The notes under the pieces: generated by a model | What the model saw: only the letters and a program-made list of their open reading frames with translations | Database searches by the model: none | What the model was told of the DNA's origin: nothing | Translations under genes and position numbers: made by a program | From: Vitrella brassicaformis CCMP3155 | Taxonomy: Eukaryota; Protista; Chromerida | Assembly (NCBI GenBank): GCA_001179505.1 | Contig: CDMY01001045.1 | Coordinates: 154,111 to 218,110, forward strand | Reading direction: 5' to 3' | Length of the DNA: 64,000 bases | Shown here: in pieces, positions 933 through 63,260 of the stretch | How the letters are laid out: each line of letters begins with the position of its first letter | How positions within the stretch are numbered: position 1 is the first letter of the stretch

Positions 933-3462
933 ATGTTCGGGGAATCTCCTCCGGGTCGCCTGGGGGCGAGACGGGGGCCCACCAAACCCGGAAAGCCGAA
1001 CCCTGGCGACTCCATCGCAACAACGTTCGCAACACAGAGGTACATGTCGTTCATGGTTCATGGATGGATGTGCACATCTGGATGCCTGATCTATCGCTGG
1101 TGCTGTGTGTGTCGTTCATCAGGTCACTGGCCACCATTCCAGATGCAACGGCTCGATAGAGGAAGCCTACGCAACCGTCTCGACGCGCAGCGGCTGTTCG
1201 GCATCTCGGAGGGCCTGGCGGCCATCCAGGGCTCGTCGGTGGCTAAGGGATGCCTGTCGGGGTATGCCTGCTTCCGCAGCCACGAGTTGGGCGCCCAGAG
1301 GATAGCCGCCAAGGTGGACAGGGGCGAAGTGACGGCCGAGGAAGATCGGGCCATGGGAGCCGTCATGGGATTAATCGTCGGCGACGCACTCGGAGCACCT
1401 CTAGGTGGGTCGGTGGCGGGGTGGGTGAGGGTCAGATACCGACCGACACGGACACGGTCTGACCAGAGATCTCACCCACGCTGCCTTTTTTGTGTGGTCA
1501 TGGTGTGCGCATTCCCCCAGAGTTTTGTGATGTGTGTCATGCCGGCGACGCGCGCACCGACTCCATCCCCGACGTGAGCGGCTTCAGCGACACTGCCGTG
1601 TGGGAGCACCCCAGATGCAACAAGTTTGAACTCAAACCAGGGTGAGAGACAAGGCGAGGCGAGGCAAGGGCGCGTTAATGTCATGTTGATGAATGGCTTG
1701 GTTGGTTGGTTGGCTGGTTGGTGCATGCAGGCAGTGGACAGACGACGGCTCCATGGCGCTGTGTCTGGCCGACAGCCTGCTGCTCCACGGCGACTGGAAC
1801 CCCCGGGACGTCCGCCACCGGTTCATCCTATGGTGGACATGCGGGTACAACAACGCTTTCGGATTCGACGCGCCCACCGACCACTCTGGCGTCCTCGCCC
1901 CCGCCCCCGCCACCAGCCAGGCGGCCGAGGGCAACACGGACAGCGACTCTTCCCCCTCGCTGCGCCACCAGCAGCTGCCGCGGAAGCGTCGCCACATCAA
2001 CAGAGAGGGGCGCGGCAGCGTGGGTCTGGGTGGCAACATATCGTTGTCGCTGCGGGAGTTCATGCGTGAGGGTGGGCGTGAGGGCTACACGAAGGAGGGG
2101 GACGAGCGGACGTCGGGCAACGGGTCGCTCATGCGCCTCGCTCCAGTGCCCGTCTGCTTCCACCGGGACCTCTCGAGGGCCATGGAGGTCGCACGCCTCT
2201 CCAGCCTCACCACACACCAGGTATGTGTTGTGCACTCAGACAGTCATCTATCTGCAACCATTCATCCATCCGTTCTGACTCATGCATGCACGAGTGTTCG
2301 TTCGTGTGTCGGTCAGGGCATCGAGGCGTCTGACGGCTGCCGTTTGCTGACTTACCTGATAGTCCGGGCCATCCACGAGCAGCCCACCGACGCACAGGTC
2401 TTCCTGCGCCCAGACCACATCACCACCCCCCTCACAGACCCCTCCACCGGCAATGAGACGCTCCCCGGCTTCGACGCTACGGCTGTGTGCTACAGCGTGC
2501 AGTGTTTGGCTCTTGCGCGTGCCGAGGAGCGACACGCCGACAATGGGGATCTACCACTGGAGGAGAGGAACTGGGAGTGGACCCATGCCAGATACCGGTA
2601 CGTACGTCACTTGCGAAAAAAGAGAGGAAGGAAGGAGGCGGGAGAGAGACGACTCATACACGCATCCAATGGATGGATGTGTGGGTGTCATTCTTTCTTT
2701 GTGTGTGTGGTGTGGTGCAGGTATGCGGCTCGGCGCGCTGCGGATCAGCCTGGGTATGTGGGCAGCTACGCCATGGACGCCCTCTCCATGGCCCTCCACT
2801 GCGTCTACACAACACGGTGAGGGAGGAAGCGATGAGAACGGAAGGACACACCATGCAAATGGCCTCCCACTGTCTCTCTGTCTCTCTGTCTGTCTGTCTG
2901 TCTGTCTGTCCTTTCGTCATCAGTAGTTTTGCGGGTGCGGTGCTGAAGGCGGCGAATCTGCGCGGCGACTCGGACACGGTAGCGGCCATCACAGGGCAGA
3001 TCGCAGGCGCCATCTATGGCATCACCAACGTTCCCAAAGACTGGATCGCGGCTGTAGAAAAGTAGGTAGGCCGACCCAAGGACGACAGACAGACAGACTG
3101 GCACATGATAGCTGCATGTCACCCACTGATGCGTCCGTCATCCATCCATGTATGTATTGATCCATCCATCCATCAGGTGGTCTGGTGGCACCGGCTTCCT
3201 GCTGGCTCGTGCCTATCATCTGCACCACCGACTGGCCGCCACCCCACCAGCCGACCCGCCCCTGGTGCTGCCCACCCCCTCCACACACGAGGCCCCACCG
3301 AACCGAGAGCACAACGCCGCTGTCCATCCCTCCGTCCACCACACGGCCCACCACCACGTGGGAGTGACGGCACCCATTCTGCCCTGCACGGCCGGGCCGG
3401 AGCCTCAGGGCGACAGACGAGGCGCACTGAGGAGTAGAGAGGATAGATTTGAGGGGCTGTGA
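933..3462 (+). CDS. ADP-ribosylglycohydrolase (ARH/DraG family), multi-exon
   Basis: Spliced exons carry the family motifs DRAMGAVMGLIVGDALGAPL, QWTDDGSMALCLADSLL, SGNGSLMRLAPV, SSLTTH, GSYAMDALSMALHCVY and AANLRGDSDTVAAITGQIAGAIYG (Mg-binding TDD and DSDT). The last exon reads WSGGTGFLLARAY and stops at 3462. Confidence 0.93.
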
Positions 3463-3898
3463 GCGCAGGCACAGTAGCAGGCTAGCTTGGGTTGGCAGGG
3501 GGCTGGATTGAGTGGGTGGGGGGTTGGTTGGCTGGGTGGGTGGAGGGGTGTGGTGTACAGCCGTGTGCAGATAGATCGATGGATAGCTGGACAACGGGAT
3601 GGATCGATGGTGGAAGGAAGGAGGGTGTAGATGCGCGGCAGAAGACGTTATTGGTTTGGGTGCCCTGAGAGTAAACGACTCGATTCTTCTATTCCGTCAT
3701 ACAACGCTCCGCACACGCACGAGACCCACAGTGGTGTTGCTTCTAACTTTCTTTGCCGCAGACAAACCACAGGCAAAGGACAACTTCGCTCCACACTTCA
3801 AGCGGTACTGGTCGCGCGATCTACGGCCCCCATGCGCGCCAGCGGGCCCCCTTTTTAGCACCGTCCGTCTCACCTTTCGTCTTTTCCTTGGGCACAGC

Positions 3899-6800
3899 AT
3901 GTGTGTGCTCTTCCTGTATCTCCTCGTAGTGTTATTCATTCATGTCACCCGAACTGCGACCTTCTCACGATCCCTCATCTCCGTTTCCCCCCAAGTGCTC
4001 GAGAATGCCAAGACACCCCTCATGTTTAGCCACCACGTCTTCGACGTCCTCCTCCCGCCAGCCGGGCTCACCCCTGCAGAGAAGCTGGCCGTCATCCGCC
4101 ATGCGCTGGCAGACAAGATGCGCGGCCCTGGAGCCCCGCATGCCACTAAGGGAGGCGCTGACGGCTTCGTCGAGCTCGGAGAGGGGCATGGCGGCCAACG
4201 AACGACCTCCTCGCTCTGGCGGCCCGTCACAGCCACTGCAGATGGCTTCGTTACGGTGCCCTTTGCTGTCAACCACACCGGTGCGTCTGGTCGGGGAGAG
4301 AGCAGCATGTTGGGCCTGAAGGAGGTCAACCGGCGGCTGGGGCTGGTCCTCTATGATGCCGACAGTCGCTCTGCAGCCACTTTCAGACAAGACAAAGAGG
4401 CCGCACAGAGGCGACGGCAGGAGACGAGCAGCCGTGATCACGTGATTGGCCCCGGTGAGGTGCCGTCTGTCGGTGGGGGGTGCTGAGGGAGGCGCCAACA
4501 GTGGGTGGGCATGGACGCGGTTCAGAGTGCTGGACAAGGGCACCTTCAATGTCCACTGTGCCGGCACCCCCACATTCTTCATTGTAAGCCTCATACCCAC
4601 ACGGGACATGGACACACACAGAGAGAGAGCAAAGACAACTGCATGACATGGCCCGCTGGATGTATCAATCTGTCTGTCGATCAGGACGGAACCTCCTATC
4701 GTGGTGAGTCTTCCTTCCCCCACGCTGCGGGGCCTGCCTCCATCTCCCAGTTGGATACGCCCTCGTCGTCTTTTGCTTCCCTGTCTGCCTTCCGGAGCCT
4801 CATATGGCCCATCGTGTTGGACCCCGGCATGCACACACTACTCGTCAGGCTGGCCCCACCACCCACCATGGCATCGGATGGCGGCCCACCGGCTCGCTTC
4901 CACTGCAGCTTCCTCCCGCCCGCCGCCCCGCTGCCCTTCTCCTCTATCCAGGTGGACTCGGGGGCAGCAGAAATGGCCAGCGGCGAGCGGATGGCGGCGG
5001 GGGGTGAGGAGGGGCTTCGTGTGCCGACGCCGGGTGACAGTGATCCCAACTGGAAGGCAGACCACTCATGGAGACCGGTAAGCCAGCCAGCCAGCCAGCC
5101 AGCCAAGGAGACGTGAGACATTCATTGGACGGGGGTACCAAATAAGGTGGTCTCTCGGTGTTGCTTGCGCGGCTCGTCTGTACGGTACGGTACGGTACGT
5201 GTGTTTTGTAGGGTGAAGTGCACCACATGCCTGACATAGTGGATGGCGTTCTGCCAACTCCCCTGGCGTCGATACCCATAGTCAATCCGAGTATGTATGT
5301 ATGTATGTACATTCATACAGTCTTGCACACCACACCACACCCAACACTTTTTCCTTGCTGACAGCTTTCTTCGTGTGCCGTCTGCCTTGCGCATAATGCA
5401 GCATCGTCTCCCGTCACAGACTTCAAAGTTGAGTTCCACACCCCCCGGGCCGTCTTGAGGCGGCACCACAGCGTGCCCGACACGGAGCACCCCGGCAAGA
5501 CCAAGGACGAGTCGTCACTGGAGGCTAAGCCCATCCATGATCAGACGCCCATTCTACAGGACCCCTCCCGCCCTCTGCTGTCGGCCACATGGCTGCCGGC
5601 CCTCAAAAGCGACAAAGACCGCTGGACCGCTCCCGTGCTGCCGGGCCAGTCCTTCCCTCTCTACATGCAGCTGACATGGAACGGGGTCAAGCCCCGACGG
5701 CTGGAGGCCGCTGACATGGCGGCGGGGGACGGGTCTGCCACGGACAAGGGCATATGCTCGGGGGCCCTGTATGGGGAGAAGGATGACCCAGAAGTGATTG
5801 AGATAGACGCCAGGATCACCGGCAACTTCCGGGACAGTGTGAGCCGGCCCGCAGCTGAGCACACGGTTGTCTTGCGGTGCAGGAGTTTCGCTCGTCGGGA
5901 TCCCTACATATTCACTTATCGCGACGTCGACGGGGCTGTCGAGTACGCCGCTGTCAGACCCCCGAAGAGGAGATGCAGGAAGGGGTTGCAACACCAGGCA
6001 GCTTTATCTGACACCCTGCTGTCTCCTACTGGCCCTCTCCTCAAGGGCCAGTTTGGCTTCGACTGGGAGGGCGCAGGACTCGCCAACGCCGTCACGGCCA
6101 TACACGCCTTCCAGCATCTAATGCCAGGCAGGCAAATATACATGTATGTATGTATGTATGCATGTACATGAACCCAACAGCACGGCCTGGTGTGGTGGGG
6201 TGTGGGGTGGTGTGGTGTCGCGAAGAATCAAGGACGGACGTGTATGGTATGGTATGGTTCCTTCAGGTGTGCCTGACCCCTTGCGTGAAGAGTATGTGCC
6301 CGACACGTCGCGGTTGGTCATCACGGGCCACTCGATGGGGGGACACGGCTGCCTCGTATTCTCGTAAGCGACAATCAATGGAGCCACTCCGAGCCAGGCG
6401 TATTAGCTGTCCGATGTATCTTCTATCTATCTATTGTTCGTGCCCTGGATGCGATGCAGGACCCACTTTGCTGACCACGTGGTGGGGTCAATGTGTGGAG
6501 CTGCATGGATCAAGGTGCACTACAACACCCACTCACAGACAGACAGAGAGGCGTGCAGACAGACAGACAGACAGACACAGAAAGACAGGACCCCTTGCCT
6601 GTGATTCATCAAATCATCGGTGTGGCAGATGAGCACTTACAGTGGGGGATATTCCCCTGCTGGCCAGCAGGATGGCCAGGCGGACAAGAGGACCCGCCTG
6701 ATGTCTTCGGGCGACAGCGAGTACGCCACGGACTTCGCCGCCGTCCACCTTGTGGGCATGCCTTTCATGGGCAGATGCGGAGAGAAAGACGACAATGGTG

Positions 6801-51360: not shown

Positions 51361-52368
51361 GTGTAATTTCGCCGGAACTCGGGCGGCGGTAAAACAGAGG
51401 CCGACGCATGCGTTTTGATCGGATCGCACCAATCACATTTGACGTCCCCAGATCGATTGCTGCGTGTCTGGGATAGAGCAGCATGTGCTGTGGTGTGCGT
51501 CTGGCAGTGCGACGAAAAGGGCGCGCAGATTTGGCCAGCCCGGCGTCCTGGCCGTTCAGATTCACTTCGCCTGTCGTCCTGCCATATCTGTCTGCGCAAC
51601 ACGCGTGGGAGCCACGTGTCGATGCAGTCAGTCATGGTTTGTGTGAGTGAATGGATGGAAGGGTCGCTGCAGCCTGCGACCTTCGCTCATGTGGAGATGC
51701 ACGTCCGGACGTCCCAGTCCGCAATTAAAGCTTTTTGACTTTGGATCATTCATGCCTCCTGTGTCTGTGTGAGCGTGAGTTTGTGTTTGGGTGCACTGCA
51801 CGTGTGTCTTAATTATCTCCTCCTTCCGACTCAAGTGGCTTAGCTTGCCGCCGGCCCATGCATGTTGGTGTCCACTGGCTGCGGGCAGAATGTGTGTGCA
51901 TCCCTCGATACGGAAGTCGCTCTATATGCCCAAAGCTTTGACTTTAGAAAGATCATGAATGACATATATATGTCGATCACTCACCGTTGGTTGGCACACA
52001 GAAACCTCATGCATGTCAGATCCGTCCGGTCCACGCAGTGAGCACACATTGTTTGTGTCTCAGAAACGCACAACAAACAAGTCTCAGAAACCAACCGACC
52101 TCTCCATCCATCCACTCATTGCGTGCAGGCATATGTATTGCCTGCCCGCCTGCAGCCTGCCCGCCTGCCTGCCTGCCTGCGCTCATTCCTGCTGCATATG
52201 GCGTACCTGACGTCACCACACCGACAAACGCCACTCACTCAAACACACTCACATCACACTTGCCACAGCGCGACCAAACGGACAAACGTACGTACGCAGA
52301 CAGACAGACAGACAGGCAGCCAGGCCCTGAACGAGCTAGCTCCCTTCCCTCCCTTGTGTACGTGTCAG

Positions 52369-55179
52369 TCACTCAGCGCCGGCCTTTTTCTTGGGTTTCC
52401 ACGTATAGCCAGTGGTCCGCTTGTATCCAAAGTGCTGGACGAGTGCGTCGCTGTCGGGCGGGCCGCGCGAGCCGAAGGGGTACGTGTGGATGGTCACAGG
52501 CATGGCGTCGCCCCCTGCAAGCCCGTCGATGGTGTGCAGCATGGGGGTGAAGATCCGCCAGGCCTCGCGCAGCTCGTCCGTCCGCACGAAATTCCGCTTG
52601 TCGCCTGCTTGGACAGAGACAGACAGACAGACAGACAGAGGGAGCCAGTGTGTCTGTCTGTCTGTCTGTGTGGGTGTAGAGTGAGTACCGTTGACGCAGT
52701 CGAGAATGAGCCGTTCGTAGGCGTCGGGCAGTCTGTCAATGTCGAATCGGTCGTGCAGGCTGAGGTCGAGCTCTGTCTGCTCGACCTCGTTGCTGAGCCC
52801 CGGCTGCTTGCCGTAGATCTTCATGTACACCGCCTCGTTCGGCTGCACCTGCAATCAATATGCAGTCAGTCGACAGAGGGAGGGAGGGAGGGAGGGAGGG
52901 AGGGGGAGGATGCACACATGCTCGCACCGCACGGAGACGTCTGGCCGGCCTCCCTACCTTGATGACGAACTCGTTCCTCGCCAACTCGCCGAACAAACTG
53001 ACGAGCAACACAACGCAGCGCGCAAATACGGCGCAGACAGGAAGGTGTTGTGTTGTGTGCGTCTCTCCCTCTCTCTCTCTGTGTGTGTGTGTGTCTCTCT
53101 CTCTCCCCTGTGTGTGTGGTGCACGTATGCCCACGACAGACAGACATACCCGCCAGGGACGTCCTTGAGTTGAATCCGCACCTCAGCCATCCGCTCCTCC
53201 AGCGCCTTGCCGGCCTGCAACCACATACATAGACACACAGATGCGTGCAGGCAAGTTCGTCTGTATTATGTCATGAGGGTGAGGGAGGGAGGGTGTGTCT
53301 GTCTGTGCTGCAATGAGTGTGCGGTGCGCGCCTTGCCTTCATGATGAAGGGGACGCCGGCCCATCTCTCGTTGTTGATGAACATGACCAGCGTCGCGAAC
53401 GTGGGGCACTGCGAGTCAGCCGGCACACCGGGGTCCTGCAAATCAAATTGGCACACACACACAAACCGACAGGATACACGCGCATGATAGATACATGTGT
53501 GTATGTGTGTGTGCACTAGGTGGCTGACGTCTTTATATCCGGGCGTCTTGCCGTCCTCCGACCGGGTGTACTGACCCAGCACCACATGCTCCGTCTCTGG
53601 TCACACGCGTCACCCACACACACATCCATCCATCCATCCACCCACCCATCACTTTGTTTGTCAGCGTACTACGTGATGCATATGGCCATTGTCCTGGGGC
53701 TTACTGATGGGTGCGATTTGTTTGAGGACCTTGACCTTCTCGTCGCGGATGTCCTCATCGAGCAGCGACGCCGGCCGCTCCATCGCCACCAATGTCAGCA
53801 TCTTTTAAACAGAGACACACACACACACAGATACATAGACCACCCAGCCGTGTGAGCGCATCTATATGGCTTCACCTGCAGCAGGTGGTTCTGCATGACG
53901 TCGCGGATGATTCCGACTTTGTCGAAGTAGCCCCCACGGCCCTCCGTGCCGATGTCCTTCACACACACACCACAGCACCATACCCCACCCAACATGTGTG
54001 TCGCTCACTCGGTGTGGGTCATGCCGATGGCCAACTGACCTCCTTGAATGTGATTCTGACGTTGGCGACGTAGTGGTTGCTCCAGATGGGGGTGAAGGCG
54101 ACATTGCCGAACCGCAGCGCCATCAGGTTCAGCACCATCTCCTTGCCCAAGTAGTGGTCGATTCGATATGTCTGCAACACACCACACCACACCCCGACCG
54201 ACACACATACATAAACAGACACACACGTACACTCATTGATTCGCAATGTACAGAGACGACGACACTTGTGTGTACTTGTGTGGGTCCCACCTCCTTCTCC
54301 TCGAGCACGGCCATGAGTTCGCTGGCGAGCTTGTCGGACGACGGCAGGTCGTGGCCGAAGGGCTTCTCGACAATGACGCGATTCCATCCTGCCATATGCA
54401 TATCACATCCATCCATCCATCAAGCCGTTCATTTAGTTCACACGTATGGCCCAAACGAACGACCACATGTCTGTCGGTGGCCCACCATGTGCAACAAGCG
54501 CACGCACCTTTTTGGCTCCATGCCAGCGGCTTGAAGGCCCTCACTGCGTCTGCGAACTGGGTGGGAGGCAGTGCCAGGTAGTACTGCACACACATACACA
54601 CACTGTGTGTGTGCCGAGAGAGGGGTGGCGTGGGTAGGTGGGCTGTGTATGCACCCATCGATCATCCATCCACAGGTTTGTGTATACGTGTGTACCATCC
54701 GGTTGGCCCGTGCGAATTTGGCTTCGTGTTTGTCCTGCAGCAGCTTGTCCAGCCGGGCCGCGTCGTCGGGACTCCCGTACTGACCACAGCTGAAGTGGCA
54801 CCCACCGATCCGATCCATCGACAAACAGAGAAGAACACACACATAACATGGATGGATGCGTGCATCTGGCGTAGTCTCTCTCTCTCTCTCTCTGTATGTG
54901 TGTGTGTGTGTGTGTCCTGCGAGCCTTACAAGTAGGTACATCTCTCTCTGAATTTGTCGGGGAAGAGGCAGATGTGCGACATGCCCCGCAGGCGAACCGA
55001 CAGAGTGCCTTTGTCGCAGAAGAACGCACCGACCTTCCTGACATACGCACACACACACAAATGGGTGGGCGAATGAATGGATTGCACTAGGGGAGAGGGA
55101 GGGAGGGTCCTCACGAAAGTCCGGGTGAGAGTCTCTCCCAGAAGTCGTCGAATGAGAGCTCAGTGCGCGCGTAGCCCTT

Positions 55180-55210
<31 letters not shown>

Positions 55211-57335
55211 GGACGAATGGGAGCGGTAACACAAATTTCATGGAGCGTGGCGTGCGCACCACGATTGTGAAGTTGCGGGGCAGCCGGCCTTCGCAGAAGA
55301 GGCTGAATAGCGCCGGGCTGACACGCACACCACACAGACAGACAGACGGCCCAGGGCGGTCTCTTTGTCTGTCTGTCTGTCTGTTTGTGCATCCTGATTG
55401 GCTCTCTGTCTCACTCACAACGTCTTCTTCTTGGCCAGATCGCCCGACGCGCCTGGATGTTTGGCAAGAAGCGAGCGGCATACACACGCAGACGTATGGG
55501 CGGCATTTGCCCGTGTTTGTGTGTATCGTATCCATCCACCAAGGCATTCATTCAAACCTACCGAGCACGACGAATGTGGTGTGCTCCTCAGACTCGGCCC
55601 GCTTGGCGTCGTCCTGGCTCACCGCAGACAACGGCGGGTAGCAGATGGCCGACACACCACCTGCACACACACACACATTGTGGATGGATGGGTGGGTGGG
55701 TGAAGGTGTGTGAGTGTGTGAGGTGATCTGACCTGCTTCGATGGTGTACAGGGCCGGGAGGTCCTGCGGCAGACCTGATGATTGTGTTGCGTGTTTGCAG
55801 AGCAGATGGATGGATGGATGGACGGACGGACGGATGTGTCTGCGCCATGCGCCCACCTACCGCCGTGCAGCACTTCGCGCCATTTGGCCATCTTGTTCTC
55901 GCCAGACAGAAAATACACCTGACCACACACACACACACACACACGAGCATGCGGACCCGCTCTCCATCATCTCAGCCACCCAACCACCTTGTGTGTCGCC
56001 CGCGCAATCAGATCCAGCGAGATCGTGATGCGATCCTGCGTGTGCCACACAGAGAGAGAGAGAGACATACATTCAGACACATACCGTCCGCACCTTTCCG
56101 GCGAATCTGTCGGTCTGTGTGTGGTGGACGAGCTGCGCCGGGTCCGTGGCGCGGGCGTAGTCAGCCGGGCTGAGTGTGGGGAACCATGACGCGATGTGGC
56201 CGTCCTCGCCCATCCCTGCCACCACACCATTCGCCACATTCATTCTGTGCATCCACCCACCCTGTGTGTGTGCGTGGGGCTGGCTACTCCCCACCGAGGG
56301 TGACTATGTCGGGTGTGCCGTGTTGCGAGATGAGCGCACTCAGGTCCTGCACACCACACCCATCCACCGATCCTTCCGTCAATCACGTGTCCATTGGTGA
56401 CGGCAGGCGTGGCTTGCCTGGTGGTATTTGGCGATGCATTGGTCGAGGGGCAGCGAGGTGTCGGGCACCACCATCGCGTCAAGGGATGTGCACCCGTCTG
56501 CACCACACACATCCATCACACACACACAGACAGTGGGCTCGCACACTCACACACGAGCACATCCAAAGCCCGCTGTCGCTCACTTTTGCAGAGGCTCTCC
56601 TGCAGCATGCGCTGGTTGGAGTCGGGGTGGTCTCGAGGCACATACCTACACAATCACCATCACACACACACACACACACACATGCGTCTTCCCCTCCTCC
56701 CTCTCTGCCCGTCCGTGAGCGTGTGCATCCTTGTCTGTCTGTGTGTTGATGCAGTGAGTGCAGTGCGCGCCTTTCATCGACGAGGAAGAACACCAGTCTG
56801 GACCACTCCAGCTCCTCCAGACGACCGAACTCTGTCAGGATCTTCTTGGGCGTCGAACCACCTGCACACCACACCACACAACACAGCACAGCACAGCACA
56901 AGCACACAAACACACAGCACCACACCTGTCACGATGAATGAGCGAATGAATGGTGCACCACTGTGTATGCGTGTGTGTGTGTGTCTGTGTGTGTGTTTGC
57001 CTGATAGTCCGATGAGAATTTTGCTGTAAGGGTCGGTGTCGATCCGCCCCTGGATGCAGACGACGAGGAAGCGCACGCACTCGGCGATGAAGCTGTCCTC
57101 ACTGTGGCAGTCGTAGTGGCGCGGGCCCTCATGCAACTCCTGAAACCACACACAGACAAACCAGACAGACAGACAGGCAGACAGACAGAGATCAATCATG
57201 TGCTTGTGTGGGTGAGTGAGTGAGTCAATATATTGTGCGTGTCTGTCGTGACCGCGGCTGGCTGACCTCTTTGCTTCTGGCCCTGGACACTTGTGAGGCG
57301 AACCTGCTGACGGGCGTCGGCGGCGTCGGCAACAT
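52369..57335 (-). CDS. G6PD: Bifunctional 6-phosphogluconolactonase / glucose-6-phosphate dehydrogenase (GluPho-type fusion)
   Basis: N-terminal 6PGL motifs IGLSG|[25 protein letters not shown] and DRITISL. C-terminal G6PD motifs [55 protein letters not shown]...[27 protein letters not shown] and [16 protein letters not shown]. Proposed start MLPTPPTP at 57335. Confidence 0.96.
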
Positions 57336-57462
57336 GATGGATGGCAGATGAATTATGTGTCACAGCAACCACACATGCAGCTCCTTCACGAGATAAGCTC
57401 GCAGAGTGGAGCGGAAGCTCTCCCCCTTTCCGCTCTCTTTCGTGTGTGAGCTGCTCCACGCC
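57336..57462. promoter_or_regulatory. Putative bidirectional promoter shared by 6PGL-G6PD and 6PGD
   Basis: Only 127 bp separate the two divergent ATGs. The spacer contains the inverted repeats 57409-57416/57428-57435 and 57377-57391/57440-57454. Confidence 0.7.
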
Positions 57463-57870
57463 ATGTCGAGTGAGATCGGTTTGATCGGCCTGGCCGTCAT
57501 GGGCCAGAACCTCGCTCTCAACATCGCCTCAAAGGTAAGCAGCCTGGCTGATGACATCACTCACGTCAGCGCGGGGCAAGCAAACGACACAGACACAGAC
57601 AGACAGGGAGGGAGAATGAATGCAACGGACCGACCAGGGCAGGGCTTGTGGGTTCTATTCTGTGCCCCTGTGTGTGTGTGTGTGTGTGTGTTGTTTGTTT
57701 GTTTGTTTGCATGCCACTGGTGTCTGTCTGCAGGGTTTCAGGATATCGGTGTGGAATCGTTCGGAGAGCAAAGTGGACGACACCACCGAGCGGGCCAAGA
57801 AGGAGGGCAACCTGCCCCTCGACGGACACAAAGACCTCAGCGCATTCGTGGGACAAACAGCCGCATGCAC

Positions 57871-57902
<32 letters not shown>

Positions 57903-58765
57903 GCGAGACCGATGGATGGATGAATGGACGTGTGGCTGTGTGTGTGTCGACATTTTCGCAGGTCCAGTCGATCAAGAAGCCCCGCAAGATCATCATGCTC
58001 ATCCAGGTACACACACACACACACATGAGTGTGCGTGGCGTACGCTGGCTGCATCGCTGTCTGCATGTGTGGATGGATGGATGGATGGATGGGTGGAATG
58101 CAGGCGGGTCCCCCGGTGGACAAGGCGATGGAGCCCCTGCTGCCCCTGCTGGTGAGCAAAGCAATCGTGTTTGATGATCGATGTGCTGTGGCCCGTGACG
58201 TGTTTGTTTACCCAACGCACCCACCCACAGGAGGCCGGCGATCTGCTGATTGACGGCGGCAACGAGTGGTACGAGAACACCGATCGGCGGACCGCACTCT
58301 GCGAGAGCAAAGGAATCAGGTAGGCAGGCGCACCGATTCACAGGGCCACCCGACCAGACAGACACCAACCCACCTGCGCACACATGGCGTCAATGTGTGT
58401 TTGTGTGTGTGTGTGTGTGTGTTTAGGTACATGGGTATGGGTGTGAGTGGCGGCGAGGAGGGCGCCCGCCACGGCCCCTCGCTCATGCCGGGCGGCACCA
58501 AGGAAGGATGGGATATCGTCAAACCCATCCTCATGAAAATCGCAGCACAGGTCACTGCATACACACACACACACACACACACACAGAGAGAGGGAGAGGG
58601 AGGGAGAGTGTGTTGGTGGTGTGTGTATGCGTTCAGGTGGATGACGGTCCGTGCGTGAGTTACATCGGACCTGGCGGGAGCGGCAACTACGTCAAGATGG
58701 TGCACAACGGCATCGAGTACGGCGACATGCAACTCATCGCTGAGGCACGCAGGAGCCACCACACA

Positions 58766-58800
<35 letters not shown>

Positions 58801-60694
58801 CACTCTGTAGAGTGTGTGGCTGGATGTGTGGATGCGCAGGCGTATGCCGTCCTGAAGCAGATGGGCGGCTTGACCAACCCAGAGCTGCAAAACCTCTTCA
58901 AGTACTACCTACCTGTCCCGCATAGCACACATGAGCCACGCTTCTGCACACGTGTGTGTGTGTGTGTGTGTGGCTGTGGCTGTGTGTGTCAAGGGAGTGG
59001 AACAAGGGCGAGCTCAAGAGCTTCCTCATCGAGATCACATCCGACATATTCGGGCAGAAGGACGACAAAACAGACGGTGGGTCGGTACACCCCCACACAC
59101 ACGTGTTCGATGGATGCGACACGCGAGCTTCTGCGTGACATCTATGCATGGCACGCTCGATGGATTCGATATATGCAGGCTATCTGGTTGACAAGATCCT
59201 GGATGTGGCGGGCTCCAAGGGCACCGGCAAATGGACCATTCAGGTGGGTGGGGTGACATGAGCTGAGCACCTTGACACCTACACAGCCACGACTGAATAA
59301 ATGGATGGATGGATGGATGCGCACGTGGTCTCTCGGTCGGTATGGTGAGCTGTGTTGTGTTGTGTTGTGTTGTGTCTGGTGGGTTTTGCAGGAGGCTGCT
59401 GAGCATGGCGTGCCGTGCCCCACCATGCAGGCAGCCCTCGACATGCGGTAAGCAGAGAGGGAGGGAGGGGCCGACACACACGCCACACACATCCAAACGG
59501 CTCTCTCTCTCTCTCTCTGTGTGTGTGTCAACAACAGCTACATGAGCACCTTCAAGGCGTTCCGTCAGCGCGCCTCTGGCAAGTTCAAAGGGCCGGCCAC
59601 CAAACCACAAGTCACGCAGAGCACACTCATCGGTAGGTACCACACACACAGACTGATTGACTGATCGCAGACAGACAGACAGACAGAGAGCCACAGACCT
59701 ACGTGTGCACACGACGTACAACATTGTATCATGCATGGGACTGACTGTGTGCACTCACTGCAGACGACGTGCGCAATGCGTTGTACTGCGCCAAGATCTG
59801 TTCGTACGCGCAGGGCCTGATGCTGCTGCAGACCGTCAGCAACGAAAAGGGCTGGGGGCTCAACCTCGGCGAAATCAGCAGAACCTGGAAAGGTCGAATG
59901 CATGGACGGCTGGCTGCATGGCATGGATACCTCCCTCGCTGCCCGACCGACCAGCTGTGTGTATGTATGTATGTATGTGTGTGTCGCATGGCGTCGTTCG
60001 TTCAGGCGGCTGCATCATCCGTGCGGTGTTTTTGGACCGCATCAAGAAGGCCTTCGACCGCAACCCACACATGGACAGCCTCCTCATGGACGACCAGTGA
60101 GCTCCTCGAGCAGCCGGGGAGGGAGGGCGGGAGGGAGGGACAGAGGGAGCCATGCCATGTGTGTGTGGTGCATGTGGTCGCGCAGGTTTGCGGATGAGAT
60201 TCAGCAGCGTGAGGTCAGCTGGCGGCGAATCGTCAACGCGGCGCAGGCGGCCGGCATCCCCAGTATGTGGCATTGCCACCAGAAACCTCTCACCCACACA
60301 GAGGCAGAGGCACCCATCTATCTATGAGTGCACGCGATGCGACGCGACACACATCTGTTGAAATCTGTGTTCGTGTGTATTGTGTGCAGTTCCTGCGCTG
60401 TCGGCGAGCCTCTGCTATTTCGACGCTTACCGATCTGCAACGGTCCGCCCCCACACCACGACAGACACACCACAACGAAGTGTTTTCTGTACCCCCTCTC
60501 TGATGGTCTGTCTGATGTGTTGTTTTGTGTTGTTTTGTGTCTGTCGTATGTGTCCATTCCCTCCCTCGTGCGTGCAGCTGCCTGTGAACCTGGTGCAGGG
60601 GCAGCGTGACTACTTCGGCGCCCACACCTACAAGCGCACCGACGACGAGGGCGGGCCCTACCACACACAGTGGACGCACTTCGCACAGACCTGA
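57463..60694 (+). CDS. PGD: 6-phosphogluconate dehydrogenase, decarboxylating (NADP+)
   Basis: [87 protein letters not shown] (catalytic Lys/Glu), KGTGKWT, GGCIIRA and [19 protein letters not shown]. Stop at 60694. Confidence 0.98.
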
Positions 60695-61810
60695 TCAATG
60701 GCAATGATCAACGAGGCAGCCGAACAACCACTAAATCGTGATAGACTGAAGGAGGGAGGGGGGGAGGGAGGGGGCGGAGGTTTTGCTGCCTTTTTTGGCT
60801 GTGGTTGGTTTGTTGATGGACTGACTGGAGGATTGGCTGCCTGCGTGCCTGAGAAGTGGCATTTTTGGTCAGTCAGTCATGCATGGGCGGAAAGATCGAT
60901 GCATGCTATGCATGTTTTCTAGCTGGCTGCTGACTGGTTGGCGGTGCTTACTCGGTCGGTGGCATGAAGAAGAACGTTTTGTTTGGCATAGTTCGTGGAA
61001 TGTACATTCGTCCATCGATGCCTCTCTGCCAACGTACACTCATTCGCACGCCAGCAGCAGCCAGCCCCCGCCCCCGTCCGTCAAGCCTGTATGTCACATA
61101 TATGCTTCTTGGTGACTGTCGTCACCGCGCACCGGCCCAACATCATTTAACGTTCGTAGAATCCGCTCATCCGTCCTCCCCCAGGAGCTACTACACTAGA
61201 GCTCTCATGCACAGTCGCTTATGAAACAGGAGAGAGGCCATCGACTGAGAAGGAAGGAGCTGGCTGAGACCAACATTGGCAGGACCTGTACCAGGTCTGT
61301 GAATGCTGACATTGTCACCGCGACCGCTCGCTATGTCTCGGAAAAGAGGGAAGAGGAATAAACGAGATCCATGTGAAAAGAGCCGAAGTACCTGTCGGCA
61401 AATCTCCATGTCTCACAAGCCTCGACTGACCTTCGCTGAGTGTGTGTATAGCGACAGCACAGAGAAGATGAGGGTCATTTGGAGGACATAACGCCGCTTC
61501 CTCATGACAGTCGTCGATGTCAGAGCGACTTGGCGAGAGACCCTGCACGCACACACGAACGTAGACGCTGTTAATATCATCGCCGTCCAGTTGATCGGGA
61601 TGCTGACGGTACAACATCTTTCGCGCATGGTATTGGTATTTGCCGAGACGACATGCAGGTGTGTGAATCCATGCCAGGCACTCCCTCCCGGCGGCAATTG
61701 GCACTTGGTGAGTAAGTAAGCAAACCAACCAACCATCCGTCCCTCATCCAGTTTGTGCCTATAGGCACAAGCCGCACAGCCAGGTCTTACGCAACAAGCC
61801 CACTGTCTGC

Positions 61811-63260
61811 CTATTGATGGATGTCTCTAAGCGTTCTCTGCTTTTCCTTGTGCCTGAGCTGCGTCCTGGTACGGGGCAGCTTCATGTGAACCTTTAGGAC
61901 GGCGCTTGCGGCAAAGTCGTCCGGTAGTGGGGGCAGCTTCTGCGTCCCCTTGCGCATCTCCTCCTCGCGAATCGATAAGACGCTCATAGACGACCAGAAA
62001 TCCTTGTTGTATCTCATATGCGCCACGCACTCACGCATCTGCATCGACACCATCCATACCCACGGACAACGTGTACATGTTTTTCCAGGAATGTCACCTG
62101 CGGAATAATCTCGCTCATCGCATTGTACAGCGGGGCTATGATGACATCGATGAAGCCACACTGAGACCGCGCGATGTTTGTTGTCCCTCTATGTGGAAGA
62201 ATCAGAGAGCCAATAGGGAGATCATCGGGAATCCCGTCTGACTCTCATCATCTTCCCCTCTGCTCTCACCGGTTCATCAGCGGCGAGATTGGCAGACCGA
62301 GAGCCTTTTCCCTGTCACCTACATCAGCAAGACACTCCCCATCTAGTCAACCCACAATCTCATGAACAGCGGGCGGTTTTGAACCTTACCTTGTGCAAAG
62401 AACTCTTGTATCACTACCCGATTCACATCCGATTCACATCCGATTCACATCCGATTCACATCAAACCCGCTGGTCTCCTTCTCTCTGGCTTACCTTTGTC
62501 TGTCCACTGCAAGTACGGCGGCAGCGGCCGGCAGGGATTGGAGACATCAGCAGCGTGCACCACCATGCTCATGATCAGCAAGCGGTCCTCGCGGCTGAGC
62601 TCTTGCTTGAGCCACTCTGCCATACGGCGTTTCAACGGTAAGAATGAGGACAAAAAGCTGCTGATGTGTAGATGCCCATTCTTAGTGGAATGATGTGCTG
62701 GGCCCCTTCGGGTCTAAGCCCTCCTTCTCCTAAGCCCTCCTTGTCTCTAGGCCCACCTTCGTCCTTAGTCTTCAGCAGTCCGAGTTTCACAAAATGCTGC
62801 GACATGTCCGTAGCCAGCACCATATGGATGATTGCCTCGCGCACTAAAGCATCCAGCAAAGAAGAATACATATGTGTAGCACACAGGGCGTATGATGCAT
62901 ATAGGCCGCAGTCCGCAGCTATGGAGTATGTGGCCACTGGCGTGTGCTTGAAAATGTTGTACTTAGACTGTTGCATGAGCTGGAAGACTGCGGCGATATG
63001 GTGGCTCTCTAACACGGCCTTGTCTGTCGCGCAAAGGAGACATGATTCATGTGCATACCACACGCATTTTTGAGCGTACCATTGTAGAGGATCGCGAGCG
63101 GGTCATTGGTCTTGATAAGGAAATTGTTGCTTACTCCAGGATGATCTGAATACCCATCGTTAACACACAGACAGCGCGCATGCACAGGAGCATCGTATGT
63201 CATGCCATTGCTACCGTAGTCGTGTATGGCCGCTGAGAAGATCACGGTGAAGAGCTCAAC
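61811..63260 (-). CDS. Class I 3',5'-cyclic nucleotide phosphodiesterase catalytic domain (5' part not found)
   Basis: Exons read IFSAAIHDY|DHPGVSNNFL, VLESHH, VLATDMSQHF, HAADVSNP, EFFAQ|GDREK...PISPLMNR and GFID. No upstream YHNxxH exon was located in 63261-64000. The 3' end may extend further. Confidence 0.9.
62418..62461. repeat. Intronic minisatellite (ccgattcacat)x4
   Basis: Four perfect 11-bp units inside a PDE intron. Confidence 0.92.

Follow-up and report, generated by a model that had tools for sequence, protein, structure and literature searches.

Conserved head-to-head gene pairs whose two members serve one function are known in eukaryotes, among them histone H2A-H2B, GAL1-GAL10 and niiA-niaD. 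Genes of the pentose phosphate pathway's oxidative branch have been found linked in other ways: three separately arisen fusions joining glucose-6-phosphate dehydrogenase (G6PD) with 6-phosphogluconolactonase (6PGL) are on record, and in Phaeodactylum tricornutum G6PD and 6-phosphogluconate dehydrogenase (6PGD) are either fused or spaced by 39 nt (PMC3148214). The locus considered here lies in a stretch of 64,000 nucleotides (hereafter the window; all coordinates refer to it) of contig CDMY01001045.1 from the chromerid Vitrella brassicaformis CCMP3155, in which a 6PGL-G6PD fusion gene of the GluPho type, on the minus strand, and a 6PGD gene, on the plus strand, are arranged head to head. Between them they encode the three steps leading from glucose-6-phosphate to ribulose-5-phosphate, which yield two NADPH. 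Our analysis indicates that the pair is genuine, expressed and divergent, and on balance probably represents an old bidirectional unit that has been retained; we class GluPho/6PGD among the conserved bidirectional pairs whose members share a function. Both genes are already annotated individually in the public Vitrella genome, and our literature search found no publication describing them as a pair.

Several known systems can be compared with this locus. As in apicomplexan GluPho, the 6PGL moiety is N-terminal and the G6PD moiety C-terminal within one open reading frame (ORF), and the best full-length matches of the Vitrella fusion, in Toxoplasma, Neospora, Besnoitia, Cardiosporidium and gregarines, are 47-54% identical to it. 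It groups with these proteins in the tree, among the myzozoan fusions, its exact placement being unsettled, and we regard it as orthologous to them. The Vitrella gene differs from apicomplexan GluPho in having 26 introns, in adjoining 6PGD head to head and in being accompanied by a de-fused G6PD duplicate with a signal peptide. In Plasmodium vinckei, by comparison, 6PGD is not within 10 kb of the fusion. As in P. tricornutum, steps 1 and 3 are physically linked in a plastid-bearing protist, but the Phaeodactylum genes are co-directional and possibly form one ORF, whereas those of Vitrella are divergent and separately transcribed, with 6PGL rather than 6PGD as the fused partner (PMC3148214). 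With H2A-H2B, GAL1-GAL10 and niiA-niaD the pair shares the divergent orientation of genes of one process, the short common spacer and its persistence across species; it differs from them in that the spacer measures merely 86-180 bp from ATG to ATG and in Vitrella carries a generic motif, co-regulation being putative here.

The main features of the locus are as follows.

52369 to 57335, minus strand: coding sequence, with stop, of the 6PGL-G6PD fusion (27 exons, 2367 nt, 789 amino acids), from spliced alignment, RNA joints and identity with protein P0160.
57336 to 57462, no strand: spacer of 127 bp between the start codons, containing both 5' untranslated regions and the shared promoter region, from the sequence and RNA contigs.
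57381 to 57410, no strand: 30 bp covered by no RNA contig of either gene; these are contig ends, which cannot prove true starts.
57395 to 57403, minus strand: the 9-mer TGCGAGCTT, one copy, inside the 30-bp gap.
57463 to 60694, plus strand: coding sequence, with stop, of 6PGD (17 exons, 475 amino acids), from RNA joints, constrained path search and identity with protein P0307.

The ATG of the fusion occupies 57335-57333 and is preceded, nine codons upstream, by an in-frame TGA, while the ATG at 57463 opens the Rossmann motif of 6PGD, so that exactly 127 bp (57336-57462) separate the two start codons, as the first-pass annotation of this DNA had stated. That the adjacency might be an artefact of assembly is ruled out by DNA of a separate study, in which one unspliced contig (X5 record 12, 57235-57576) crosses the spacer.

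Transcription was assessed with four public runs searched over 54800-60700, of which three are RNA-like, with canonical splice joints, and one is DNA-like, being unspliced. Both genes are represented by spliced contigs in the three RNA-like runs, which come from two studies, so that neither is an untranscribed member of the pair. Contigs of the fusion extend to 57380 (X2 record 6) and those of 6PGD begin at 57411 (X1 record 3), and the divergent transcription starts most likely lie within 57381-57410. The genes are thus head to head, their transcripts by this measure beginning less than 1 kb apart (127 bp from ATG to ATG, and at most 30 bp between the outermost contig ends). Contig k-mer depths for the fusion and 6PGD, respectively, were 18.3 and 21.8 in one RNA run, about 6.5-8.7 and 16.8-22.6 in another, and 83.1 and 97.4 in the third; since each contig has a single depth value and no correlation can be drawn from three samples, these values are a weak, rough hint of similar levels. 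No contig of the RNA runs bridges the spacer, the genes lying on opposite strands and in separate contigs, and an operon or polycistronic cluster, which would require co-directional genes on one transcript, was therefore rejected.

The motif TGCGAGCT served as the lead for a check of the spacer. The 8-mer of the spacer motif has 6 matches in the window against 2.9 expected, and TGCGAGCTT occurs 3799 times genome-wide against 339 for the reversed control, an excess of about 11-fold, often in close pairs. It is likely that TGCGAGCTT is a generic core-promoter element of Vitrella. The earlier proposal of a two-gene regulon co-transcribed from one bidirectional promoter is in this way upheld in part: both genes are transcribed, with known 5' ends 30 bp apart, but as separate divergent transcripts, and from a spacer whose motif is generic.

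Fusions of 6PGL and G6PD with identical domain order were found in coccidia, gregarines, Cardiosporidium, haemosporidians and dinoflagellates, and the head-to-head arrangement with 6PGD recurs in two other loci, both from gregarine-like apicomplexans. One of them (L025, run SRR26360272) is an intronless contig of 6036 bp with 6PGD at 386-1804 on the minus strand (472 amino acids, 59% identical to that of Vitrella) and 6PGL-G6PD at 1985-4876 on the plus strand (963 amino acids, 47% identical), separated by 180 bp. The other (L027, JAQSLO010000248.1 in assembly GCA_029603195.2) is a 20.7-kb contig with introns and 43% GC in a fly assembly, evidently from a contaminating protist, with 6PGL at 1116-2 on the minus strand, 6PGD at 1203-3141 on the plus strand (476 amino acids) and a spacer of 86 bp. 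Both genes of L025 and L027 fall together and with myzozoan sequences: on the 6PGD tree the two make up a clade (94/95) that has Vitrella, Alphamonas and one more transcriptome sequence as its sister (93/87), and in the fusion tree they join the contaminant of a bee assembly (Hylaeus; 100/99) and then the eugregarines (90/95). The assemblies of Condylostylus longicornis (L027) and Hylaeus volcanicus (L028: JANILQ010001853.1, GCA_026283585.1) hold scaffolds with apicomplexan-type GluPho and 6PGD that are filed as insect, and both scaffolds probably derive from gregarine-like parasites.

Conservation is confined to the pair, since the flanking genes differ among Vitrella, L025 and L027. In Vitrella the outer genes are unrelated, being a phosphodiesterase-like gene past 6PGD and unrelated ORFs past GluPho. 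An ORF piece at 62459-62713 on the minus strand, beyond the 3' end of 6PGD and tail to tail with it, carries the HAADVSNP motif typical of cyclic-nucleotide phosphodiesterases.

With 22,817 genes in the Vitrella genome (PMC4501334), we calculate the chance of one given gene being the divergent upstream neighbour of another as about 2e-5 per genome. That the pairing recurs in a second deep lineage thus speaks for either common ancestry with many losses or convergence, some constraint being implied in both cases. The recurrence in L025 and L027 is the strongest argument for the pair being functional or at least selectively retained. That it arose separately in Vitrella and in the gregarine-like clade would agree with its patchy spread, as it is missing in the Hylaeus contaminant, in Gregarina niphandrodes, in coccidia and in one haemosporidian and one dinoflagellate, and with the lack of detectable similarity among the spacers. 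Such convergence is nevertheless improbable in our judgement: it would take two independent events at about 1e-5 each, such an arrangement is much more readily lost than gained, and Plasmodium falciparum still has GluPho and 6PGD on chromosome 14 at a distance of nine locus tags (PF3D7_1453800 and PF3D7_1454700; PMC13340282). The latter spacing fits a decayed linkage, with which it is compatible without being proof of it.

Synteny of the two genes in relatives, which the first-pass annotation had put forward as a check, gave in sum a divided answer, with the pair in L025 and L027 and no pair in seven loci. For Chromera the comparison is moot, since it reportedly lacks the oxidative arm (PMC4501334), and no Chromera homologue was among the results of our homologue search. 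Nor can the check be made in Perkinsus, which is without 6PGL and G6PD (PMC3148214). Among dinoflagellates the fusion is represented by P0223 of Symbiodinium natans (locus L023), which groups with the MMETSP proteins P0276, P0281 and P0291. The presence of the fusion in a dinoflagellate genome implies that it predates the split between apicomplexans and dinoflagellates, an earlier date than the one inferred in 2011 from a Karenia expressed sequence tag (PMC3148214).

The model of the fusion gene was obtained with a homologue-guided spliced aligner in which introns seen in RNA were held fixed, and its stop codon is at 52371-52369. Its parts, all on the minus strand, are:

57335-57267, 57139-57001, 56861-56771, 56645-56584, 56497-56418, 56346-56295, 56215-56094, 56035-55988, 55918-55861: exons 1-9.
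55774-55733, 55660-55562, 55452-55419, 55317-55260, 55176-55115, 55037-54930, 54789-54696, 54583-54508, 54388-54291: exons 10-18.
54171-54040, 53956-53876, 53801-53705, 53596-53529, 53435-53337, 53214-53150, 52997-52958, 52848-52689, 52604-52372: exons 19-27.
55746 to 57100: 6-phosphogluconolactonase domain, exons 2-10 (P0160 residues about 37-249), from PF01182, TIGR01198, alignment A1 and PDB 3e15.
52420 to 55568: G6PD domains, exons 11-27 (residues about 285-772), from PF00479 and PF02781 exon matches, TIGR00871 and PDB.

The model is 100% identical over 789 amino acids to P0160, a complete ORF of an MMETSP transcript, and the summed lengths of exons 1-15, a 58-nt exon included, reproduce the record coordinates of RNA contig X8 record 17 (2830 nt). 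This contig, which comprises exons 2-15, and X1 record 1 (2544 nt, exons 7-15) place both domains on one mRNA. In P0160, Pfam Glucosamine_iso (PF01182) matches residues 37-249 (E=4e-42), NCBIfam pgl (TIGR01198) barely passes its cut-off (125.3 bits against 124.45) and the nagB models stay far under theirs; the conserved 6PGL motifs are visible in alignment A1, and the domain matches PDB 3e15, the 6PGL domain of P. vivax, with E=5e-23. The C-terminal part contains G6PD_N (PF00479, 285-479) and G6PD_C (PF02781, 481-772) and clearly passes the cut-off of NCBIfam zwf (TIGR00871; 550 bits against 400.6), its closest solved structures being eukaryotic G6PD chains (E about 1e-151). By these matches the product is a fusion protein of the GluPho type, a predicted bifunctional enzyme with 6-phosphogluconolactonase followed by glucose-6-phosphate dehydrogenase activity.

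For 6PGD, RNA anchors were combined with a codon-usage Viterbi path search, and two junctions were then corrected by hand; the solution with the fewest introns was dropped, as it left microsatellite introns as coding sequence. The exons, on the plus strand, are:

57463-57534, 57734-57847, 57962-58006, 58104-58151, 58231-58319, 58427-58550, 58637-58744, 58840-58901, 58994-59076: exons 1-9.
59179-59243, 59392-59447, 59538-59632, 59764-59892, 60006-60096, 60186-60262, 60390-60442, 60578-60694: exons 10-17.

RNA contig X1 record 3 (1528 nt) contains the entire coding sequence and fits the model, which is also 100% identical over 463 amino acids to the public Vitrella protein P0307. The latter starts 12 codons downstream, at the second methionine, leaving out 57463-57498, and among the 12 residues that it lacks is the initial glycine of the GLIGLAVMG Rossmann motif. 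The upstream ATG is contained in the RNA contig and is also where the homologues in L025 and L027 start, which supports 57463 as the predicted start of 6PGD. The exons match PF03446 (NAD_binding_2) and PF00393 (6PGD C-terminal domain), and P0307 scores 640.6 bits with NCBIfam gnd (TIGR00873; cut-off 426.7), so that the product is most likely a decarboxylating, NADP-dependent 6-phosphogluconate dehydrogenase, predicted to be cytosolic. Indeed, both proteins are most likely cytosolic because GluPho has no hydrophobic N-terminus, 6PGD begins straight at the Rossmann motif and neither has an extended presequence; a localisation survey, in agreement, assumed a cytosolic pentose phosphate cycle in chromerids (PMC6668581).

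The two genes contain 42 introns, 26 in the fusion and 16 in 6PGD, all of them GT-AG or GC-AG and rich in microsatellites. Five of the 42 begin with GC (57000-56862, 56770-56646, 56417-56347 and 53336-53215 on the minus strand, 58745-58839 on the plus strand), a share of about 12% in two genes whose models both match independent database proteins exactly. In eukaryotes GC-AG introns usually make up roughly 1%, and the Vitrella pair is far above this.

Bacterial zwf-pgl and gnd-zwf-pgl operons encode the same three enzymes side by side, and it could be asked whether the pair is the remnant of such an operon acquired by transfer. With bacterial Pgl of zwf-pgl operons the 6PGL domain shows 37-48% identity, and 6PGD shows 43-48% identity with bacterial Gnd of gnd-zwf-pgl operons from metagenomes. 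The bacterial clusters, however, are polycistronic, co-directional and intronless, whereas the Vitrella pair is divergent, monocistronic and intron-rich. In a scan of metagenomes with the 6PGL alignment (80 loci, L029-L108), which yielded only bacterial zwf-pgl or gnd-zwf-pgl clusters and no further eukaryotic pair, all 80 loci were co-directional with zwf upstream of pgl, and none was divergent. Moreover, the G6PD part is of eukaryotic type, being about 30% identical to the products of those zwf genes and about 50% to animal and fungal G6PD, all 42 introns are spliceosomal, and the fusion is orthologous to apicomplexan GluPho. Descent from a transferred operon is accordingly a very remote prospect, and a recent transfer, which had been doubted from the outset, is excluded by the co-directional bacterial loci, the introns and the eukaryote-like G6PD part. 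The 6PGL motifs FL[VI]DERYV and DGH[IL]AS[WI]FP of myzozoans are common to bacterial Pgl of zwf-pgl operons; the 6PGL moiety may be of old bacterial origin, which is a question separate from operon transfer.

A six-frame search of the whole genome with PF01182 gave no match even at the fusion locus, single exons being too short for the model, and copies of 6PGL were therefore sought with exon pieces as protein queries. Neither the 6PGL nor the 6PGD exons that served as queries had a match elsewhere in the genome. For G6PD a second gene exists (P0171, 559 amino acids, contig C326:68531-71981), with an identity of about 89% over residues 257-788 of the fusion. The two loci are 78.5% identical at the DNA level over 3.6 kb (window 52000-55599), introns and 3' flank included, no 6PGL exons were found upstream of the paralog, and the first exon, which is new, codes for a typical signal peptide, MLSLKSLVVLATVCGA. 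On account of the DNA-level alignment, the lack of 6PGL exons and the new first exon, the paralog is identified as a recent partial segmental duplicate of the fusion. It is a de-fused G6PD, predicted from its signal peptide to be directed to the secretory or plastid route, and de-fusion of GluPho was considered rare in the 2011 paper on the fusions (PMC3148214). The claim that a single pair encodes the complete oxidative branch can thus be kept inasmuch as all three activities are encoded in it, but G6PD is not unique to the pair.

A number of observations weigh against an old unit with a common regulation. The pair is not the sole source of G6PD, as the C326 gene lies outside it. The median intergenic distance in Vitrella is 92 bp and head-to-head pairs are over-represented, and the genome paper holds that stabilising transcription, rather than co-regulating it, is the main role of such pairs (PMC4501334). 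The spacing and orientation of the pair are therefore ordinary in this organism, in agreement with the caveat in the first-pass annotation that divergent pairs are common and orientation alone is not special. The spacer motif TGCGAGCTT is generic genome-wide and not specific to the pathway, and no motif is convincingly common to the spacers of Vitrella, L025 and L027, nothing exceeding chance. Contigs show neither starts nor levels, and co-regulation of the two genes through the shared spacer is putative. As to conservation, L025 and L027 are sisters and together represent one extra lineage, and in L027 the 6PGL frame is still open at the contig end, beyond which the G6PD part lies, probably cut off there. 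In all seven other loci, namely those of Cardiosporidium, Besnoitia, G. niphandrodes, P. vinckei, S. natans, Eimeria stiedai and the Hylaeus contaminant, no 6PGD was found within 10 kb of the fusion by gene calls and tblastn, and the Hylaeus contaminant lacks the pair although it is the closest relative of L025 and L027.

It could be, then, that the two genes are neighbours like any others, in a genome where at some 92 bp between genes almost all of them have a spacer in common with the next, and that no coupling specific to the pathway exists. They would then persist because a breakpoint in the spacer would damage two essential genes, and not through selection for co-regulation. The compactness of the genome, its excess of head-to-head pairs and the published doubt on co-regulation (PMC4501334) speak for this explanation, as do the generic spacer motif, the absence of one common to the three spacers and the loss of the arrangement in most sampled relatives. 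We consider it rather unlikely, since the same two consecutive genes of the pathway, out of some 23,000, adjoin each other, with different flanks, in no fewer than two lineages separated by a deep split, and genes of the oxidative branch have repeatedly been fused or linked in other eukaryotes (PMC3148214). Even so, mere neighbourhood of this kind still concedes selective retention.

If the pair is an old, retained bidirectional unit, as we think probable, RNA polymerase II would start bidirectionally from a single nucleosome-free spacer based on the generic element TGCGAGCTT. The fusion would hold steps 1 and 2 at a ratio of 1:1, and step 3 would be coupled to them through the common spacer. 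This coupling, or else the cost of breaking a short shared promoter, would have kept the pair since before the divergence of chromerids and gregarine-like apicomplexans, and most other lineages would subsequently have lost the head-to-head arrangement. More tentatively, and with rather less confidence than we have in the unit itself, the unit may predate the split between chromerids and apicomplexans and have persisted in Vitrella and a gregarine-like lineage over hundreds of millions of years, in which case the nine-gene spacing in Plasmodium would be its decayed remnant and the unit would owe its cohesion to a spacer that balances the three NADPH-producing steps.

Textbook biochemistry is unaffected by these findings. 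If the reading is true, the pair would be a eukaryotic equivalent, and a rare one, to the gnd-zwf-pgl operon of bacteria, formed by gene fusion and a bidirectional promoter. Functionally coherent neighbours are rare in eukaryotes, and a pair that holds a whole branch of a pathway and recurs across deep lineages makes it possible to ask cleanly, in a natural setting, whether co-regulation is what preserves bidirectional promoters or whether they are merely hard to break. The findings are also relevant to how GluPho, an antimalarial drug target, evolved: the presence of the fusion in a chromerid and in dinoflagellates makes it older than was inferred in 2011, the Vitrella paralog indicates that the fusion is reversible by partial duplication, and the linkage of GluPho to 6PGD may be ancestral.

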